Below are positions 3,678 through 60,472 of a DNA stretch of 64,000 nucleotides, piece by piece. Source of the DNA: Podarcis erhardii (lineage: Eukaryota); assembly GCA_964252035.1 (NCBI GenBank), contig OZ176200.1; one strand, written 5' to 3'. The translations under genes and the position numbers were made by a program. The notes below the pieces were generated by a model. It saw only the letters and a list, made by a program, of their open reading frames with translations. It made no database searches and had not been told where the DNA came from. Within the stretch, counting starts at the first letter, position 1. Every line of letters begins with the position of its first letter.

Positions 3678-5699
3678 CCAAACAACTAAAACACAATATG
3701 TGGGTACAGGCCATGTGTTCACATTTGTTGTAGGTACATGCACACACATTTACATATATACACACACAGGTACAGCTCCCAAGATTTGTAGATTTGTATG
3801 GGTGTTGTAGGAAAATATGAGGAGGAATTTATTGGAGAGTTCCAGGATCCCATCCAACTTGGAAGATTATGCTTTGGGCAATAGCCCTGGCCAGGTCTTG
3901 CAAGTTTATCTCTTCATTGTTAAGTATAAGTGATATGTGGCCACAGGAACTTAATAACTGAAGGATTGCTCTCAATAGCTAGTCTTCTAAAAGGCCAGCA
4001 AACATAATGAAAGAGGATGCTTCCCCTCGTCCAACACACCCACTCCCTGCTGAGGATGCTATAACCCAATGCTTCTGTGTGAATAACAGACTGTAGTTTG
4101 AGACAGACTGCAGACAGAAGAAGAAAGGTGTGTGTTAGACTTTGAAGCATCTTACTGTTGAAGTATCTCCGATGCTCAAGCCGTATATATTTGTAAATAC
4201 AGTAACTGCAAATACTGCAATAACACCAATAAGCCTCCACTGTGACCTTCTTCCAATGAAAAACTATAGCTGAGTAAGTGCTGCACTCCACTCCTGGAAC
4301 TTCTCACTTGTTGGAGAAGTGGGGAACAGTATCTGTGTAGGTTACCTGCCTTGTCACTTTGCTGGATCCTCTAGTTTTATTTTCTCCAAAGAAGAGTGAA
4401 GCTAACTTTGGGAGAAAGTGAATGGCAGGAGCTTATTATACCAATGAGCAGAAGCTAATTCCTATTTCTCTCCCACAAGCACAAATGTGTTACCTGCTTG
4501 CTCCCTGGTGCAGACTTCCCAGAACCATCGCACAAAACTTTAAACAAATAAATAAGAAACGTGACTCGTACATTGTCTTAAGGAGACAGTAAGCTGTGTT
4601 ATGTTTCCACTGATCTGCAGAGGTTAAGGAACACATTCTGACAGATAAAGTGAGGACAGAGGGTCTTAGGTTAACCTGCAGAGAGGCTTGGGCTATGTGA
4701 ATCTTGAATATTAAGCCAAACTGGGCGAGTTCCCAGTGCTTCTGATGTGCTCCCACAAAACCCCAAATATTTCCCTTCTTAGCAAGTGTAGTAGAACAGA
4801 GGCAAGCTGTTGCATAGTTATTTCTCTCTCTGTCTGTGTCTGCCAAAGATCAAACAGTGTTTGAGTCTGATACTAGGCAGAACCAGAATCAACTGGTAGA
4901 AACATTGTGAAATAAAATCGCAGCCAAGGAAGGGGAAAGGCAGTAGTTGTGCTTAACATTCATGACTTCTTGCCCTGTCAGCGCTGCTTCAACTCCAAAG
5001 TTCAAAATCAGTTTGAACGACAGTGGCCTTTCCACTTGATCCATAGATCCTCAGACCAATGTGAATTCATGAACCCTCCTGGATGGAAGCTTACATTAAC
5101 CCTTGCAACCCAAACCCCTAGCTTTTCTTCACTCTAAATCTAACCTTGCTGTTAACTATATCCCCTGCAACATTTATGCACTTTTACACTGTTGCACCTC
5201 TAAATTTAATATATAATTCTAATAATCACTGTCCTTTTACACTAGATGTCATTCTGGGCAACACTGTAGCCCTGGTTCAGCCCAGTAGATTTTTCCCATG
5301 ACAGAAGACTTCCCCTTTAATTGGCATCTTGTTTAAACCAAAGGCAAAGGCAGAATGAAGTCATGTGGGAGCCACAGATGTGGTGGATAAATTGCTGTTC
5401 TTGGAGTTGCGAAAGCAATATTTAAATTTGTGTTCAGCCATGAAGTTACTGGATACCTTTGAGCAGATCCCCATAGTTATTCTCCCTCCCTGTGTTTCCC
5501 ATCACATGAGACGAAGAATGAGGCTGTGCTCATTCATGCCATGTGCCACATCATGTGCCCTGCCACCCTCAGCCCACCATGTGTTGGCGGTCTGAAGAGA
5601 GGAACCTGCTCTGTGCATGCAAGTCAGAACCCTGTGCAATCAGATAAAAGAAAGCACTTCCCCATGCTGCGCATAGCTAGGACAGCTCTTAAAGTAGAT

Positions 5700-9539: not shown

Positions 9540-10221
9540 TATGTGTGTCTTTATGCCAACTCATAAAATAAACCCACACCATTGTGGAAAGGCAATATAA
9601 ATTATGCTAATGCATAATAAGAGCATTACATAAGGGAGGGACCCGCTGTCTCCTCAAAAGCACACAAAGGATGTAGAAGGGCCTAGTATTGCTTTGATGA
9701 GTGATGATGAGATTAGATAAGATGAAGGAGCTTGATTAGGCAGGCAAAGCTGAGGATGGGAATGGCCAGCACCACTTTTTCCAAACATGCCTCAGACCTT
9801 CCATCATCCTCTGCCCTGCCAAGGAAGCTAGGAGCAGAAAGGTCTCTAAAAGGAAAAGGGAATGACACTGCATTAATGGTGGGGGACCCCAGTCACACAA
9901 AAACAAGAAGTGGAAAACACGTGGAGCAATGATTCCAGCGAGAGATGATTAATGCATAAAGGCAGGAAGCCGTGACTGAAGTATTTCAAAATAATGGTTT
10001 TTACGGCCATAGTCTTTGTTAATGGCCGCCAGAAATACAGGGAAATTCCAATTCCCTGTTGGCACCAGTGGGTGTTTTGAAGGGATGTGCACTGGCTGCA
10101 AAATTCAATACGTCTCTCTAGCTTTGGGAAACATCTAAATCTATTTCAGAGCCACTCCGTGTCTTTCCTATTCATTCTTCACGACCCACTTAGATCTATC
10201 TAAAAACAAATATAAACTCTG

Positions 10222-13200
10222 GTGTTTTTTTTATAATATTTATTAAAGTTTTTTAAACAATAAACAAAAAACATACATAATAACATAGTCTTTTCAAATT
10301 TCCACATTTCATTCTCCTCTTTGGACTTCCTCACATCTCTTGTTCCTGCATTCTGAACTCACAAATTTTGCTAGCAAATTATTTACTTGTTTCAATTCAT
10401 ATCATATAATTATCCAATATTAAATCTCAAATTTTAGAATTTAAATCACACTTTTGAGATCTTAGTTTTGAAATATTGTTTATCCAAAATTTGTCTTTTC
10501 TTTCAATTACGTTCAAATTTATATTCCTTATTACTAATTTGTTGGAGCCGTGTTATTACAAATCTTACATCTTTCTTAGCATTCATACAATTTACAATGT
10601 TTTTGTAGATAATCCTTAAATTTCTTCCAGTCCTCCTCCACCAGTTCCTCTCCCAGGTCTCGGATTCTGCCTGTCATCTCAGCCAGTTCCATATAATCCA
10701 TCAGTTGCATCTGCCATTCTTCCAGCGTGGGCAAATCTTGAGTTTTCCAGCATTTAGCAATGAGTATCCTTGCTGCTGTTGTGGCATACATAAAAAAAGT
10801 TCGATCCTTCTTTTGCACACTCTGGCCGACACTGCCTAAAAGAAAGGCCTCTGGTTTCTTAGGGAAGGTATACTTAAATACCTTTTTCAGCTCATTGTAT
10901 ATCATTTCCCAGAAAGCCTTCACTCTAGGGCAAGTCCACCAGAGGTGAAATAATGTTCCTTCAGCTTCTTTACACTTCCAACATTTATTGTCAGACAGAT
11001 GGTATATCTTTGCGAGCTTGACTGGAGTCATGTACCACCTATATATCATTTTCATAATGTTTTCTTTCAAGGCATTACATGCCGTGAACTTCATACCGGT
11101 GGTCCATAACTTTTCCCAGTCAGCAAACATTGTTGTACCCTATGTCCTGTGCCCATTTTATCATAGCTGATTTGACCGTTTCATCCTGTGTATTCCATTT
11201 TAGCAGCAAGTTATACATTCTCGAAAGTGTCTTAGAGCTGGGTTCTAACAATTCTGTTTCTAACTTTGATTTTTCCACCTGGAATCCTAATTTTTTATCT
11301 GACTTAAAGGCTTCTTTAATCTGAGCATAATGTAGCCAATCTCGCACTTTCCCCTTTAGTTTCTCCATACTCTGCAACCTCCAATTGTCTCCATCTTTTT
11401 CTATTATTTCCCAATATTTCGGCCATTTGGCCTCCATATTGAGTCTTTTTGGGGCCTTAGCCTCCATTGGTGATAACCACCTTGGGGTCTTGTTTTCCAA
11501 TAAGTCCTTGTATTTTGACCAGACATTGAACACTGCTTTTCTGACAACATGATTCTTAAAAGCCTTGTGTATTTTAACCTTGTCATACCACAGATATGCA
11601 TGCCAACCAAAAGCATTGTTAAATCCTTCCAAATCTAAAACATCAGTGTTTTCAAGAAGCAGCCAATCTTTCAACCAGCAGAAAGCTGCTGATTCATAGT
11701 AGAGCTTTAAGTCTGGCAGGGCAAAGCCCCCTCTTTCTTTAGCATCAGTTAGTATCTTAAACTTAATTCTGGGCTTTTTGCCCTGCCAGACAAATTTTGA
11801 GATATCTCTTTGCCACCTCCCAAAACACTCCATTTTATCCACAATCTGCAAGGTTTGAAACAAAAACAACATTTTTGGCAATACATTAATCTTAATAGCA
11901 GCAATGCGTCCTGACAAGGAAAGTTTCAGTCTTGACCAAACATCTAGATCCCTTTTAATTTCAGACCAACATTTTTCATAATTATCTTTAAATAAATTCA
12001 TGTTCTTCACTGTTATGTTTACCCCTAGGTATTTTACTTTTTTAACCACATTTAATTCTGTCTCTTTCTGAAACCTTTCTGATTCTGAAGAAGTCAATTT
12101 TTTTTCCAAAACCTTGGTTTTTTGCTTGTTAAGTTTGAATCCCGCCACCCGACCAAACTCATAAATCAGTTGCAATACCCTTTTAGTACTTGGCTCTGGC
12201 TCCTGTAAGGTCAATACTAGGTCATCTGCAAATGCTTTAAGTTTATACTGTTTCGCTCCGACCTGAATACCCTCCACCAACCGGTCTCCTCTAATCGTAT
12301 TTAGAAGCACTTCCAGGACCGATATAAATAACAAGGGGGAAATAGGACAGCCTTGTCGTGTTCCTTTTTCAATTTTAAACTCTTCCGTCACCACATTGTT
12401 CACTATCAATTTTGCCTTCTGCTCCGAATAGATTGCCTCTATCCCATTCTCAAACCCCCGCCCCACTCCCATTCCTTCCAAATTTTTCTTCATAAACTTC
12501 CAAGAAATATTGTCAAAGGCCTTCTCCGCATCTATGAATATCAACACTGCTTTTGTATTAATGTTTGTTTGCAAGAGTTCCAAAATATCAATAATATTCC
12601 TTGTATTTGCAAACAAATGTCTACCTGGGAGAAAGCCTGCTTGGTCCTTATGAATCACTTCATTTAACACTTTTTTAAATCTACTTGCCAAAATGTCTGC
12701 AAATATTTTGTAATCCACATTCAGGAGGGAGATGGGGCGGTAGTTCTTGAGTTGTGTCTTTTCGGTTTCTAGTTTAGGTATCAATGTGATGAAAGCCTCT
12801 TTCCACGACTCTGGTGCCTTCTTCCCTTCCATAATTTCATTACAAACCTCCATTAATGGATGTATCAAATAATCTTTCAATGTCTTATAATATTTGGAGG
12901 TGAGTCCATCTGGCCCTGGAGACTTGCCCAGTTGCATGTTCTGAATGGCTTCATCAATCTCTTGTTGTGTTATTTTGTAGTTCAGGATTGTTCTATTTCG
13001 CAGGGACAACCTTGGTAGACCATTCTTCTTTAAAAATTGTTCTATCTCCACTTCGTTTTGCGGCCCTTGTGTATATAATTGTTTGAAATATCTCTGGAAA
13101 CACTTTCTAATCTCCACTGGATTCTGGATGTTTCTTCCTTCAATTTCTAAATTTGTTACCGTGTTCAGTTTTTGTCTCTTTTTCAGCTGCCATGCTAGCA

Positions 13201-26377: not shown

Positions 26378-27599
26378 TACAAACACAGGTGTGAAATTTG
26401 TTCCACAGTAGCTACTAGTTTGCTCCAAAGGAAAGCAGTAATATATGCTGCTTTATTTTTAAGGGTTGGTAAAAACTGGCGAGTTCTTGGCAGTCTTTTT
26501 ATTTTGTTCGTTTCACTTTGGACTTGTACAGTGACTGGCATTCCATAGAATGGGATTAACCGCACTGTACTAGACACAGTTGAATTCAAGGCTTGTATCA
26601 GAGGCAGATTTAGGGCAGGGAGAGTGGCTCCCTGCCCCCCGCCCCGGGCTCTGAACCGAGGCATGTGCTGCTGTGCATTGCAACTATGATGTAGTGCACG
26701 TGCAGAAAGGAAAGCACACTGAATTTTGGCCTCACACAAGGTGCTGCTGAAATTTGAAAGACCCAAGTCTGCCTGTGCTTTTATCCTAACACTATGGGGT
26801 TTGCTTGTTTGTTTGCTCTTGTACTGGGAGGTGTCAGGTTTGTTTCCAGTGAAACAGAATTGCTGTCAAGAGCAATTGTTGCTGCTAGTCTAAGCTTGAA
26901 AGCATAGCAGCGAACTCCTAGGGGCTGAGGTCCCTTTGTCCTCCTCCCTCATAAAATATTGGAGGCAGCTGCTCCCTCCCCCAAGTTGATGGGCATTGCC
27001 ATTCAAATGATGTGTGTGCTGCATCTTGTGATTGTGAAGAGCGGGGCTTACCTGAGCCCCCTCAATATTTATTCAATTTGGCACTCCTGCTGGAAAGCCA
27101 AGAAAAGTCCAGGAATCTAATCAGGAGTACAGCTGATGCTATAAGGAAGAGAGTGCCTGTGCAGAATGCAGTTCCATCTACTAGACTAGGGACACGATCA
27201 AGGTGAGCTCAGACCCTCCAAGTGTCCCTATTTTCCAGGGACAGTCCCGGATTTACAGAAGGTGTCCTGGTTTGATCCTGGAATGCCCTGCATTTCCTTA
27301 GGACGCCCCTATTTTCACCGGGGAAATGTTGGTGGGCATGTCTTAGCCTGATAACAGTCGCGCACCTTTCTTTTGAGAACCAGTGAGCCAGCCACCTATT
27401 TCCACTTAAGCAAAGTCACAGAGAAGAACCTAACAACCACCAAGCACTTCGTCCTTCGTAAGTCCTGCGTTTAAAGTGCACTTTCTGTCCTAACAAACAC
27501 ACGGGGAACGATTCGTTGCAGCAGCAGCAGCGGTGACCCCATTATCTTGATTTCCAGAACGGGACAGGCCAGGACTGGAAAAGCGGAAAAAGTCAGCAC

Positions 27600-28086
27600 C
27601 AAGCCCAGGTGAATGAATGGAGCCAGCAGCCGCGGCCCGCGCTTGCGAGCTTCCTTTGTGGCTCCCGCCCCTCGTTCCAAGCCGGAGAGAGGGCACGTAA
27701 CAATCCCAGATCCCAGTCTCTCCCTGCACGTCCGGCACTGCCCGGGAGCTTTTTCGTGCGCTGCGTTGGATCCCGCGTGTTCCCAGCGCGTGTCCTCGAG
27801 GGACGGCTGGATGAGGCGGCGGAGGCGGCGGCGAGAGAGAGAGAGGAAGCCAGGAGGGCGGGAAGGAGGGAGGCGCTGGGCGGGGGCGGAGGCGCCGCTC
27901 GCTCCCCGTGGTACGTGTGCACGCTCCCGAGCGGCATGTCCTCGCTTCTCGTATCCGGCGGCGTGTGGCGCGAGCATGGCATTTCCCGCGTGGAGCTCGG
28001 GCCCGGCCAGAAGCGGCATGCCGCCGCCGTGGTGAGGCGATGCCGCCCCGCCGGCCGGGAGCGGGACCTGGTCTTGCGCGCAAACC
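27600..28086 (+). promoter_or_regulatory. CpG-island promoter/5' UTR of exon 1a with GC boxes and HIF-core motifs
   Basis: Very high CpG density; GGGGCGG at about 27883-27889; CACGTA 27694-27699, CACGT 27727-27731, TACGTG-tg-CACGC 27912-27924. TSS position unknown. Confidence 0.65.
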
Positions 28087-28695
28087 ATGGCCTCCTCCGG
28101 CGGGGAAGCGGCCCAGCAGCAGCCCCCGGCGGCCGCCCAGCTCCGCGGAGACTCAGTAGAAAGCATGAGGAGAATTTTCATCCGCCACCCGCCCGGGAGC
28201 CGCCCGGAGGGGGGCGGAGAGGGGCAGCCTGCCGGGCCGGCCCCAGGCCCCCTCGGAGGCCTCCTGGGCCCCGCTGCGAGCCCGGCGGAGGCCCCGGGCG
28301 TCGAGGGCGCTTCGCCCTCCGCCGGCTCTCCGCCTGGCAGCAAAGCTCCTCTCCGGGAGCCCCGCAGAGATGCGCAGAGGCTAGTCTTGCGCTACGTGGT
28401 GCCCTGCATGAACGCCTATGGCTTGTGCATAGTCGACCACTTCCTGGGGCACAGGATGGCCGAGAAAATCTTCCAAGAGGTCCTGGCTTTGCACCTGAGT
28501 GACAAATTCCAGGACGGCGCCCTGGCGAGCCAGAAGGCGGGCGGCGGCCGAGCCATTCGCGGGGACAAGATTTTGTGGGTTGAGGGCAGTGAGCCGGGCT
28601 GTGAAAATATAGGCTACCTCCTGAAAAGAATGGATAAGCTCATCATGTACGCAGATGGCAAGCTGGGGCGCTACAAAATTAGAGGAAGACACAAG
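28087..28695 (+). CDS. EGLN3: Putative alternative first coding exon (exon 1a) of EGLN3: about 95-aa Pro/Gly/Ala-rich N-terminus plus an EGLN1/EGLN2-like N-terminal half of the HIF prolyl hydroxylase domain
   Basis: ATG in strong Kozak context (aaccATGG) with an in-frame stop upstream (28033-28035). 203 open codons including YVVPCMNAYGLCIVDHFLG...IRGDKILWVEGSEPGCENIG...GKLGRYKIRGRHK, ending in AAG|GTTAGT, phase 0. This is the same junction as exon 1b and is frame-compatible with exon 2. Splicing to exon 2 is inferred, not observed. Confidence 0.8.
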
Positions 28696-29589
28696 GTTAG
28701 TAGTTTGCAAGCCCCGACCGAAGTTCACTCCGGGCTCCTCCGGAGTTTCTGATCTCCCTCTCTGCCATTTCATGTACTCTTCCGAGTCTTAACCACGCAA
28801 TTCCTGGCCGCTCTGCTACCAGCTGCAAACTCGGGCTTGGCATTTGGTCCATCCGCTCAGATCCTAACCCTAGTTCGATCGCTTTGTGAAACAACTTTAA
28901 ACCGTGTAGCGTTCACAGTCTGGCAGCCCACGTGGGATTTCCTATATCCACGAACTGGAGAGGTAGTAGCGGGTGATTGTGTATGGCGGGGGGTAACCTC
29001 ACTACGCTTAAAGACACAGTTTCCTTTTTTTTTTTTTTGCTTTTCCCGCCTTCATCAAAAGTTCCCTAGAGTTATTAACCAGGATTTGTGAGCTAGAGTT
29101 TCAAGGAGAACAAATTTTCTGAAACACTCGTGCGTGTATATACATATATATATAACCCCGAACATCTTACTTTAACGGCTTTCTCTAACGTTTATACAGT
29201 ACTGGTAATTTCTGAAACGATAGTTATCTTGGCAGGTTAGGAGAGTGGCATATTTTCCTAGCTTTTAGGAGAAGAGGAATGAATTTAGAATCCAGGTGGT
29301 GACAAGTCAGTGAGTGCTTTTTAAACACATCATCTGTAACGAGAGGCTTTTGAAAGCCGGGAACTGGTATTCCGCACGCATGATCTTGTTTTCAAAGCGA
29401 ATTCCAGCTCTGCAATATGTTTTGTCAGCAGATGATCAGGTGTGAAAAGGGTGGAGGATGTCTTGTAGTGGGAGAGGGAGAGAAAGAAAAGAGGGAGATA
29501 AGCACTTGTAACCTCGCTCCCCATCCCTATAGCATTAAGTTGCCAAGAGAAACTCAACTGGCACTTAACGCCCTTATCCCCCCCCCCCC

Positions 29590-30529
29590 GTTTGTTTACA
29601 TTGGCTTGTAGTATGTGACCGTAGTAGAAGCGTACATGCTGGGGGAGAATTCCTCAATGGCGGAGACCACACCCACTCCGAGTTGTAGGCGGCGCATGAC
29701 GAACCATAAGCCGCGCCTCCTCCGGACACGCGGCTTTTCCTCTCCGCCCTCTCCCCCACGCCTTGATTCCAGCCGTGAACCCTACGCGGGTTGGACGCTT
29801 CCGGCGAAGCCCCGCCCCGCCTCCCTCTTGATTGGCTGCCCTCACGTTCCACAGGGCTGCGGGTAGGCGCGGGGAGAGATTGTCCCCGGGACGGGGCTCC
29901 ACCCACGTGGCGCTCGCCGCAGAAGTAGGAACACATTCTGCACGTAGCAGACGTATTAATCAGAGAGGGGCCATCTGCTGCCTCGGTGAAATAAATTGAA
30001 AGGAGTTTGCAGGACTCGGCACCAAAAAAAAAAAAAATTAGGGGGAGTGATCACATCAGCAATTGCGGGGTGTTCACACACTGGTCACCCGGCCTTAAAA
30101 CTGGTAGAAAAGAGCTGCTTCAGCTTCCTTTTCCAGAAACTGCCTCTCTGCCAAGGCGCTGATCCCCCCCCCCCCCCGGTATTGGGTGGAGGTCAGTCCG
30201 CGGAAGGCGTGCAGCCACCGTTCACTTCATTAGCCAGCCTTGTGTCGCCCAGGGGCTGGGAGAACCCGAGAAGGTGGCTGCTGACTGCGCTGAAGACAAA
30301 AGTACGAGTTTAGCCAAACTTTTGGGCACGCCGGTTTCTCTGACTAGCCGGACACTGATTTGCTCTGCTCGCTTCTCCCAAGAGTTAGGCATCGCTGCTG
30401 GCGCGTGTGGCGGATTCAGTGTGTTTAGAATCGCTGATAGAAACCAGGTCTCCTGGCGCGCGCTCCGCCGCTTGGCTTGCGGCTCTTGACTTTCTGCTAC
30501 AAGGGGCGAAATCAGTCGGGTTCATTAAA
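29590..30529 (+). promoter_or_regulatory. CpG-rich promoter/5' UTR of canonical EGLN3 exon 1b
   Basis: TGTTTAC 29593-29599, ATTGG 29600-29604 and 29831-29835, GC box CCCCGCCCC 29810-29818, CACGTG 29904-29909, CACGTA 29941-29946; no ATG from 29699 to 30529. Confidence 0.7.
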
Positions 30530-30886
30530 ATGCCACTGGGACATATCATGAGATTAGACCTAGAGAGAATTGCCTTGGACTACATAGTGCCTTGTTTGCA
30601 TGACATTGGTTTTTGCTACCTGGACAATTTTTTGGGCGACTTGGTAGGAGACTGTGTCCTGGAACGTGTGAAGCAGATGCATTATAACGGGGAGCTGCAG
30701 GATGGCCAGCTAGCCGGCAAGCGCAAAGGCATCTCCAAAAGACACTTGAGGGGCGACCAGATAAAGTGGATCGCAGGCACTGAAGAGGGATGCGAGGCCA
30801 TCAACTTTCTCTTGTCACTGATAGACAGACTGGTTATGTACTGTGGAAGTAGACTTGGCAAATACTATGTGAAAGAGAGGTCCAAG
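30530..30886 (+). CDS. EGLN3: EGLN3/PHD3 canonical coding exon 1 (exon 1b), 119 codons
   Basis: Translates MPLGHIMRLDLERIALDYIVPCLHDIGFCYLDNFLG...RHLRGDQIKWI...GKYYVKERSK, the recognisable EGLN3 N-terminus; donor AAG|GTAAGA, phase 0. Confidence 0.97.
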
Positions 30887-33289: not shown

Positions 33290-33424
33290 CATGTGAGGTG
33301 GGTTAGGCTGAGAGGCAGTGACTGGCCAAGGTCACCCAGTGAGCTTCATGGCCAAGTGGGAATTTGAACCCTGGACTCTCGGGTCTTAGCCTGACACTTT
33401 AACCACTATAACACACAGGCTCTC
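33290..33424 (-). mobile_element. MIR/Squam3A-like SINE fragment (similar relics near 22830-22980, 46620-46800 and 52985-53170)
   Basis: gtgaggtgggttaggctgagag...ccaaggtcacccagtgagcttcatgg...tttgaaccc...ttaaccactat motif set. Confidence 0.6.
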
Positions 33425-33550
33425 AGTTTAAGATTGTTGCTTTAGGCTGTAAGCTGATAACATACTTGGTGTAAGTCCCATTGAACTCAAATGAGGAAGG
33501 GCTATAGCTGTACCTAGGGGTTGATGAAACCCCTGCAGGGTCACAGACCC

Positions 33551-33605
<55 letters not shown>
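33551..33605. repeat. (GT)14(AT)n compound microsatellite
   Basis: Direct inspection. Confidence 0.95.
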
Positions 33606-33609
<4 letters not shown>

Positions 33610-33656
33610 CAATATTCAACTGTCTGGTGTTTGAGTCCTACCACACTACCTGGAGT

Positions 33657-34954: not shown

Positions 34955-35344
34955 TAATTTCCACAAGCAGACTATCTAAAGTAGAATTTAACATGAGTGT
35001 GAATGTTTAATCTCCTGTTCTCACCAGTGACACAGTGGTCCTGCCTTCCAATGTGTGCTCCATGCTATCTATATCACAGTTAGGTTTACCTTCCCACCCC
35101 CTCCCCGGCACTACCATGCAATTTGTCATTGTTACTTTGAACTTTCAGAAACTCTGGACAATAATCCAAACCAGCCTTGGGTACTCCTCCCTGTCTCTCC
35201 CCTTTCCTTCTCATGCTCTCATTCTCTATTTATTTATTTATTTATTTATTTATTTATTTTCTATGCCACTCTTCATCCAGGTAACACTGGGCAGTTTACA
35301 ATATAAAAACACAAAAATACATAGCATAGTAACAAAAAACAGTA

Positions 35345-35386
<42 letters not shown>

Positions 35387-35409
35387 AAAGGGTCATAGAT
35401 GGTTTAATT

Positions 35410-38206: not shown

Positions 38207-38673
38207 AAGTGCATCTAAAGCTATGGTTTTCCCAGTAGTGATGTATGGAAGTGATGTATGGAAGAGAGCTGGACCATAAAGAGGGCTGATCGCCAAAGAA
38301 TTGATGCTTTTGAATTATGGTGCTGGGGGAGACTCTTGAGAGTCCCATGGATTGCAAGAAAATCAAACCTATCCATTCTTAAGGAAATCAGCCCTGAGTG
38401 CTCACTGGAAGGACAGATCCTGAAGCTGAAGCTCCAATACTTTGGCCACCTCATGAGAAGAGAAGACTCTCTGGAAAAGACCCTGATGTTGGGAAAGATT
38501 GAGGGCACAAGGAGAAGGGGACGACAGAAAACGAGATGGTTGGACAGTGTTCTCGAAGCTACCAGCATGAGTTTGACCAAACTGCGGGAGGCAGTGGAAG
38601 ACAGGAGTGCCTGGCGTTCTCTGGTCCATGGGGTCACGAAGAGTCGGACACGACTAAATGACTAAACAACAAC
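38207..38673 (+). mobile_element. RTE-BovB LINE 3' fragment
   Basis: ORF 38258-38665 ...RIDAFELWCWGRLLRVPW...LKLQYFGHLMRREDSLEKTLMLGKIEG...; 3' end cacgaagagtcggacacgact plus (CAA)n-type tail; near-TSD AAGTGCAACTA/AAGTGCGACTA. Confidence 0.92.

Positions 38674-57418: not shown

Positions 57419-57550
<132 letters not shown>

Positions 57551-60307: not shown

Positions 60308-60472
<165 letters not shown>

Follow-up and report, generated by a model that had tools for sequence, protein, structure and literature searches.

The EGLN3 (PHD3) gene of the lizard Podarcis erhardii carries two homologous first coding exons in tandem, here called exon 1a and exon 1b. The pair probably originated through a duplication inside the EGLN3 lineage that preceded the crown group of jawed vertebrates and that provided the gene with two alternative first exons, of which exon 1a was later lost repeatedly. 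The exon structure, the antiquity of both exons, their tandem layout in a chimaera and a tree topology with moderate support are the well-grounded parts of this picture.

The EGLN3 Locus of Podarcis erhardii Contains Two First Coding Exons

The DNA studied here, referred to as the window, is a stretch of 64,000 nucleotides from contig OZ176200.1 of the P. erhardii assembly GCA_964252035.1. The EGLN3 locus within it comprises the following features:

28087..28695, + strand: EGLN3 alternative first coding exon 1a; 203 codons, an open reading frame (ORF) with ATG
30530..30886, + strand: EGLN3 canonical first coding exon 1b; 119 codons, MPLGHIMRLDLERIAL..., an ORF
57419..57541, + strand: EGLN3 shared exon 2 with the HxD residues of the Fe(II) triad; placed by tblastn of P0001, acceptor TTAG/GCAATGG
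60332..60471, + strand: EGLN3 shared exon 3 with the distal Fe(II) histidine; ends in a split Arg codon; placed by tblastn of P0001
62889..62962, + strand: EGLN3 shared exon 4, (R)YAMTVWYFDAEERAEAKKKFRNLV, with the 2-oxoglutarate-binding Arg region; placed by tblastn of P0001
27500..30500, no strand: CpG-rich stretch that spans the region upstream of exon 1a, exon 1a itself and the region upstream of exon 1b

The protein P0001, the EGLN3 isoform X1 of Podarcis muralis (325 aa), is 96-100% identical to the window protein and served as its stand-in in the searches, in the comparison with PDB structures and in the exon 2-4 tree. The final small coding exon of EGLN3, which accounts for 12 residues in P0001, falls past the end of the window.

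Exon 1a resides in an ORF that spans 28087..28752, starts with an ATG and is preceded by an in-frame stop 17 codons upstream of this ATG; a consensus splice donor (AAG/GTTAGT, phase 0) lies within this ORF at 28695/28696. The first 95 residues form a G/P/A-rich N-terminal extension devoid of cysteines, and residues 96-203 (28372-28695) represent the N-terminal half of the PHD catalytic domain, the beta2-beta3 loop included. Exon 1a as a whole is 96% identical to P0001, and its 108-aa domain is 100% identical to that of Podarcis muralis and 99% identical to that of Zootoca. Exon 1a is thus an intact coding first exon of EGLN3.

Exon 1b follows 1.8 kb downstream in the same orientation. The two exons terminate at 28695 and 30886, respectively, both with ...K/GT in phase 0 and at the homologous residue; the donor of exon 1b reads AAG/GTAAGA. 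Exon 1b is 86-94% identical to EGLN3 of birds, mammals, turtles and other squamates, and it is to our knowledge the sole first exon of EGLN3 in mammals and birds. The shared exons 2-4 match EGLN3 of other amniotes at 95-100% identity and encode the motifs RHVDNP, NPHEV and (R)YAMTVWYF, in which the iron-binding HxD...H triad and the Arg that binds 2-oxoglutarate are found. It follows from the position at which exon 2 begins that the iron ligands and this Arg all reside in the shared exons. Pfam places its 2OG-FeII_Oxy_3 domain on residues 205-296 of P0001 (E = 4e-22).

The ratio of observed to expected CpG is 0.7-1.0 in the CpG-rich stretch (27500..30500) vs 0.0-0.35 in its flanks. Two GC peaks stand out in this stretch, one at 27.5-28.7 kb (0.66-0.74) and the other at 29.5-30.25 kb (0.59), from which we infer two putative promoters.

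Other elements of the locus are found in intron 1 of EGLN3. An ORF of 135 aa on the + strand (38258-38665), ending ...GRQKTRWLDSVLEATSMSLTKLREAVEDRSAWRSLVHGVTKSRTRLND, presumably resembles the C-terminal tail of ORF2 of BovB/RTE-type LINEs, elements that are common in squamates. TA/CA dinucleotide microsatellites at 33423-33650 and 35300-35390 are visible as repetitive ORF translations.

Exon 1a Resembles EGLN1 but Lacks a MYND Finger

BLASTP aligned the exon 1a domain with exon 1b at 43/108 identities (40%) with one gap (E = 2e-32). On the PDB chains of human EGLN1, the same domain aligned without a gap at 61/108 identities (56%; HMMER alignment, identities counted by hand); the E-value of the exon 1a ORF against PHD2 chains in the PDB was 5e-37. 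An initial inspection of the letters of this DNA, hereafter the sequence-only reading, had estimated these values at about 39% and 56%, and our measurements agree with both. The HMMER scores of exon 1a reach about 131 bits for EGLN1, about 110 for EGLN2 and about 72 for the PHD of Trichoplax; exon 1b scores merely about 96-101 bits against EGLN1. That no MYND zinc finger precedes the exon 1a domain, as had also been noticed, is borne out by the cysteine-free residues 1-95 and by Pfam, which detects zf-MYND in none of four 1a-type proteins (P0001, P0084, P0025, and P0031), whereas it does detect this domain in turtle EGLN1 (P0236).

Distribution, Antiquity and Losses of Exon 1a

Word-index searches retrieved 1a-type proteins that bear the name 'EGLN3 isoform X1' or one close to it. 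Their sources are lacertids, snakes, geckos, varanids, iguanians, amphisbaenians, turtles, caecilians, Protopterus, Erpetoichthys, Polyodon, Atractosteus, Amia and many teleosts. Cluster look-ups added four batoid rays (570-aa isoforms) and Betta. Canonical 1b-type EGLN3 is found in mammals, birds, alligator, turtles, squamates, the three amphibian orders, coelacanth, teleosts and chimaera. Cyprinids possess both types (P0066, P0072, and P0332), and so does the chimaera Callorhinchus, for which a 1a-type model (P0082) exists alongside canonical 1b-type EGLN3 (P0331). At the Callorhinchus locus (L001), exon 1a (4393-4749), exon 1b (10016-10339) and exons 2-4 (19.7-21 kb) follow each other in the same tandem order as in the lizard. 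This tandem arrangement in the chimaera and the wide distribution of exon 1a imply that both exons are older than the crown group of jawed vertebrates. The sequence-only reading had reptile EGLN3 keeping both first exons; reptiles did keep them, but a restriction to reptiles is too narrow since most jawed-vertebrate lineages kept both. Rather than being absent from all EGLN3 loci outside the squamates, exon 1a is carried by lineages from turtles to chimaera.

The search for losses combined tblastn with a profile HMM of exon 1a and covered the 10 kb upstream of exon 1b in one species per group. In these 10 kb, no exon 1a was detected in alligator (L002), swallow (L003), deer mouse (L004) or spadefoot toad (L006); the best E-values of the profile in these four loci exceeded 8, vs 3e-59 and 2e-51 in the window and chimaera controls. 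Over the 10 kb searched, the deer mouse locus likewise failed to yield the decayed copy of exon 1a that had been suggested as a trace to look for upstream of mammalian EGLN3. Exon 1a is hence gone, or too decayed to be recognized, at least from mammals, archosaurs and anurans, with one species standing for each loss.

Between lizard and chimaera, exon 1a is 63% and exon 1b 55% identical, which indicates that both exons have been under constraint for the whole period. Within each species tested, the two exons are 39-45% identical, and there is accordingly no sign of gene conversion in any of them. Within amniotes exon 1a has evolved faster than exon 1b, as lizard and turtle share 78% identity in 1a vs 92% in 1b, and lizard and Anolis 65% vs 93%. 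This faster evolution fits with a relaxed constraint preceding the loss of exon 1a in other tetrapods.

These rates, together with the losses in several tetrapod lineages, would also fit with the lizard retaining exon 1a only as a relic without use, whose ORF is intact but which is either untranscribed or not spliced to exon 2. We consider such a status very improbable. The ORF, the ATG and the consensus donor are all intact, exon 1a lies inside a CpG island, its domain is conserved to 99-100% among the lacertids named above, and spliced 1a isoform models are present in many squamates. The use of exon 1a in P. erhardii is suggested by this conservation and by the RefSeq/Ensembl models of other species.

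Several observations on individual 1a-type sequences deserve to be recorded. The 1a domain of iguanians (Anolis P0068, Sceloporus P0017, and Phrynosoma P0007) is 65-78% identical to that of the lacertid vs 93% for 1b, and the terminal branch of Anolis 1a has a length of 0.48; this divergence suggests relaxed or altered selection on exon 1a in iguanians. The N-terminal extension of the batoid 1a isoforms (cluster of P0084: Hemitrygon, Hypanus, and Mobula) comprises about 336 residues without any Pfam domain; elsewhere it measures about 95 residues in tetrapods and 60-110 in fishes. Podarcis muralis has a second copy of the 1a ORF (P0003, 'EGLN3-like', 221 aa) on a contig of 63.5 Mb, with P0001 being encoded on a contig of 137 Mb. 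Over 203 residues P0003 matches P0001 at 92% identity; its reading frame continues across the donor, and conserved positions are altered (WVEG to WVKG, GCEN to GCGN). This copy might represent a pseudogene or a duplicate dispersed recently. Models that fuse 1a and 1b in one protein (P0007 of Phrynosoma, P0064 of Sphaerodactylus, P0065 of Lerista, and P0066 of Cyprinus carpio; non-RefSeq) would duplicate half of the catalytic domain and are probably annotation artefacts of the layout with two first exons.

Exons 1a and 1b Group Together in Phylogenetic Trees

An exhaustive HMMER search provided representatives of EGLN1, EGLN2, hagfish and invertebrate proteins, whose identities were checked by cluster names. 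In a quick maximum likelihood (ML) tree of 204 exon-1 segments, the 1b clade (99) and the 1a clade (88) were joined with an SH-aLRT value of 92 inside a vertebrate clade (99). A careful ML tree was calculated from 73 rows and 109 columns under LG+C20 PMSF. It recovered clades for 1a (99/94), 1b (100/100), EGLN2 (97/99) and EGLN1 (92/79), and it placed 1a and 1b as sisters at 93/89, a node that, with about 109 columns, falls short of strong support. Exon 1a formed a separate clade outside that of EGLN1. Cartilaginous fishes branched first within both the 1a and the 1b clade, and the branching order inside the 1a clade, which runs from chimaera and rays up to lizards, tracked the species tree. 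The view that 1a is not a recent copy of 1b, as put forward in the sequence-only reading, is thereby upheld.

The stems of the 1a, 1b and EGLN1 clades in the careful tree have lengths of 0.21, 0.52 and 0.03, respectively, and these lengths account for the shorter distance of 1a to EGLN1 than to 1b, its sister. In approximately unbiased (AU) tests, neither the topology that unites 1a with EGLN1 and EGLN2 against 1b and the outgroup (delta lnL 12.5, p = 0.162) nor that which unites 1a with EGLN1 (delta lnL 9.4, p = 0.20) was rejected.

Four-cluster likelihood mapping relied on 20,000 quartets, an independent L-INS-i alignment and the site-homogeneous model LG+F+G4, and apportioned the quartets as follows, with 44% of them unresolved:

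(1a,1b): 68.4% of all quartets, 7231 fully resolved
(1a,EGLN1/2): 16.5% of all quartets, 744 fully resolved
(1a,outgroup): 15.1% of all quartets, 756 fully resolved

The share of the (1a,EGLN1/2) grouping is no better than that of the noise grouping, 16.5 vs 15.1%. Long-branch attraction under a site-homogeneous model would be expected to draw 1b to the outgroup, against the (1a,1b) result that we observed.

A census of the alignment columns found none with a derived state common to 1a, EGLN1 and EGLN2 against 1b and the outgroups. Where 1a, EGLN1 and EGLN2 agree and 1b differs, the outgroup matches 1a. Candidate derived states that unite 1a and 1b are A in place of V in column 52, G in column 57, L in column 84 and, in column 104, a basic residue instead of N. 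The EGLN1-type signatures that had drawn attention to exon 1a are indeed present in it; they are, however, not specific to EGLN1, as invertebrate PHDs have them in common, and they therefore represent ancestral states. In pairwise comparisons EGLN1 is 58% identical to EGLN2, 53% to the hemichordate PHD and 55-60% to 1a. Since EGLN1 is about as close to the hemichordate PHD and to EGLN2 as it is to 1a, the likeness between 1a and EGLN1 reflects slow evolution, and by these comparisons it is retained ancestral sequence.

A tree of exons 2-4 recovered EGLN1, EGLN2 and EGLN3 each as a clade, with the near-identical Podarcis protein inside the EGLN3 clade (90/85). Separate trees for the first exon and for exons 2-4 had been called for at the outset. 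The exon-1 tree yields the pairing of 1a and 1b, but in it, and in the exon 2-4 tree alike, the branching order of EGLN1, EGLN2, hagfish and EGLN3 is not resolved; the exon 2-4 tree for this reason cannot date the exon duplication.

Three Other PHD Loci Show a Single First Exon

The scan for a second exon-1 domain covered the 10 kb upstream and intron 1 of turtle EGLN1 (L007, with an intron 1 of 30 kb), sawfish EGLN2 (L005, adjoining TMEM160) and the hemichordate PHD (L008). No second exon-1 domain was found in these regions of the three loci, and hence also no PHD3-type exon near EGLN1 or EGLN2, the counterpart that the sequence-only reading would have led one to seek there. The missing second exon in the EGLN1 and EGLN2 loci is weak evidence, as an exon lost in ancient times would have decayed. 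The single first exon of the hemichordate is consistent with a duplication within the vertebrates. Outside EGLN3, a single candidate for another first exon came up, a weak tblastn match between sawfish (Pristis) EGLN2 intron 1 (L005:22299-22409) and the exon-1 domain of its own gene; at 29% identity over 59 aa and E = 0.14, it is at chance level and was discarded.

The exon boundaries are identical in all three loci. In the hemichordate Glandiceps talaboti, exon 1 of the PHD gene ends at the same residue as in vertebrate EGLN genes and is followed by exons of about 41, 46 and 22 aa; the intron-exon plan of PHD genes consequently predates the vertebrates.

Origin of the Two First Exons

The sequence-only reading had proposed an origin before the vertebrate genome duplications, with reciprocal exon loss afterwards. 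The PHD locus of that time would have possessed one first exon of the PHD2 type and another of the PHD3 type; EGLN1 and EGLN2 would later have lost the 1b type, and EGLN3 would have kept both, followed by losses of 1a in some lineages. The ancestral vertebrate PHD gene would then have made two enzymes, EGLN1 and EGLN2 would have arisen by exon loss, and 1b would be an older, separate lineage. We regard this scenario as unlikely. In its favor one can cite the higher raw identity of 1a to EGLN1 (55-60%) than to 1b (39-45%), the AU test that did not reject the corresponding topology (p = 0.162) and an age of both exons that reaches back at least to the crown jawed vertebrates; a loss that dates back more than 450 million years would leave no remnant, so that the lack of such an exon at the EGLN1 and EGLN2 loci carries little weight. 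Yet 1b joins 1a in the ML trees (93/89 in the careful one), and the likelihood mapping gives the 1a-EGLN1/2 grouping a share that is close to noise, vs 68.4% for the pairing of the two exons. The states common to 1a and EGLN1/2 also occur in invertebrate outgroups and are hence ancestral, no derived column unites the three, and EGLN1 is as close to the hemichordate PHD (53%) and EGLN2 (58%) as to 1a, which speaks for slow evolution. The hemichordate locus has a single first exon, as do the turtle EGLN1 and sawfish EGLN2 loci, and at least one or two additional exon losses would be required.

An ancient capture, in which a first exon of the EGLN1/EGLN2 lineage was copied upstream of 1b before the crown jawed vertebrates and 1a would be sister to EGLN1/EGLN2, appears to us still less probable. 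The best identity of 1a outside its own group is with EGLN1, and the AU test did not reject their union (delta lnL 9.4, p = 0.20), but 1a falls neither in nor beside EGLN1/EGLN2 in any tree, lacks the MYND finger that exon 1 of EGLN1 possesses, and pairs with EGLN1/2 in 16.5% of the quartets vs 68.4% with 1b. Moreover, such an event would need an exon to be copied between chromosomes in the correct orientation and phase. We attach practically no probability to a recent event, be it a squamate-specific tandem copy of 1b or a capture from squamate EGLN1/2. Its sole point of support is the adjacency of 1a and 1b at 1.8 kb. The two exons share merely 40% identity, and an ancient 1a clade outside EGLN1 and EGLN2, with orthologues in turtles, caecilians, lungfish, ray-finned fishes, rays and chimaera that branch according to the species tree, refutes a recent squamate copy or capture. 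A duplication inside the EGLN3 lineage remains the explanation that we prefer.

A Model for Two EGLN3 Enzymes From One Locus

Under the preferred duplication model, exons 1a and 1b would be mutually exclusive first coding exons of EGLN3, each with its own ATG, and either of them would supply the N-terminal half of the catalytic domain and be spliced to the shared exons 2-5 with the Fe(II) and 2-oxoglutarate ligands. One EGLN3 locus would thereby yield two enzymes, a long form of about 325 aa from exon 1a, whose N-terminal extension would be disordered and whose beta2-beta3 loop would be PHD2-like, and a short form of about 240 aa from exon 1b that corresponds to canonical PHD3. Separate X1 and X2 models of EGLN3 exist in many species, and both ATGs are present in the window. 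The beta2-beta3 loop sets substrate preference in PHD2. We infer a mutually exclusive use of the two exons, their expression from two promoters and a different substrate preference of the two products. P0001 aligns with the PHD2 catalytic domain without a gap over residues 96-310 (E = 1.6e-109); the 1a isoform should for this reason fold as a complete hydroxylase, with an N-terminal half that is PHD2-like in loop length.

The pair of exons may stem from a tandem duplication of the first exon, or from a duplication of the whole gene followed by loss of the later exons of the upstream copy. This event would have taken place after EGLN3 split from EGLN1 and EGLN2 and before the split between chondrichthyans and osteichthyans. 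Exon 1a would then have stayed near the ancestral PHD sequence and exon 1b would have changed fast on its own stem, which would explain why 1a looks EGLN1-like. Independent losses of 1a would have occurred in mammals, archosaurs and anurans. Squamates, turtles, caecilians, lungfish and both ray-finned and cartilaginous fishes have retained it.

The 1a form and canonical PHD3 (about 239 aa in mammals and birds) are products of the same gene, as exons 2-4 fall in the EGLN3 clade and 1b is the canonical first exon. They differ in that the 1a form has another sequence throughout the N-terminal half of its catalytic domain (40% identity) and is longer by about 95 N-terminal residues, and in that no 1a lies in the 10 kb upstream of 1b in the loci examined of mammal, bird, alligator and frog. 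With PHD2/EGLN1, exon 1a shares a gapless alignment at 56% identity, a beta2-beta3 loop of equal length and many ancestral motifs; in contrast to EGLN1, it has no MYND domain, falls outside the EGLN1 clade, sits at the EGLN3 locus and is, according to the gene models, spliced to EGLN3 exons.

Known variants of EGLN3 with changed N-termini or exon use are rat SM-20 with its N-terminal extension and the human PHD3 delta-1 and delta-4 splice forms (PMC3963164). None of them has a second homologous first exon, unlike the EGLN3 gene of the lizard. The rodent long form, also represented among our matches (P0284 and P0285), owes its extension to a start codon that lies further upstream, in frame, on exon 1b itself (in P0284 the extension precedes the 1b domain), and the human forms have parts of known exons deleted. 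A review portrays PHD3 as a short enzyme with little variation among vertebrates (PMC3963164), and a study of EGLN evolution in fish reports three paralogues and no fourth (PMC11370800). Two PHD3 transcripts of Megalobrama, described in a 2016 report that is cited in PMC8772553, may correspond to the same isoform pair, given that cyprinids carry 1a and 1b. Our literature search found no description of exon 1a, the Megalobrama report being known through that citation only. Exon 1a is already contained in the automated annotation of many genomes; how old it is, that it is sister to 1b and that it was lost repeatedly appear not to have been reported.

If our model is correct, most jawed vertebrates beyond mammals, birds, crocodilians and frogs would make a second, long EGLN3 enzyme. 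With an N-terminal half, loop included, as far from PHD3 as that of PHD2, the long form is predicted to be in effect a fourth HIF hydroxylase. There are practical consequences as well. The published zebrafish phd3-null allele (PMC10724695) carries an 8-bp deletion that shifts the reading frame in exon 1 of the 243-aa form. Should zebrafish possess exon 1a, like carp and other cyprinids, phd3 alleles of this kind may spare the long isoform. The data also suggest a view on the origin of the short PHD3 enzyme, in which the conservative exon 1a appears to be the original first exon and exon 1b a fast-evolving duplicate that later stood alone in mammals.
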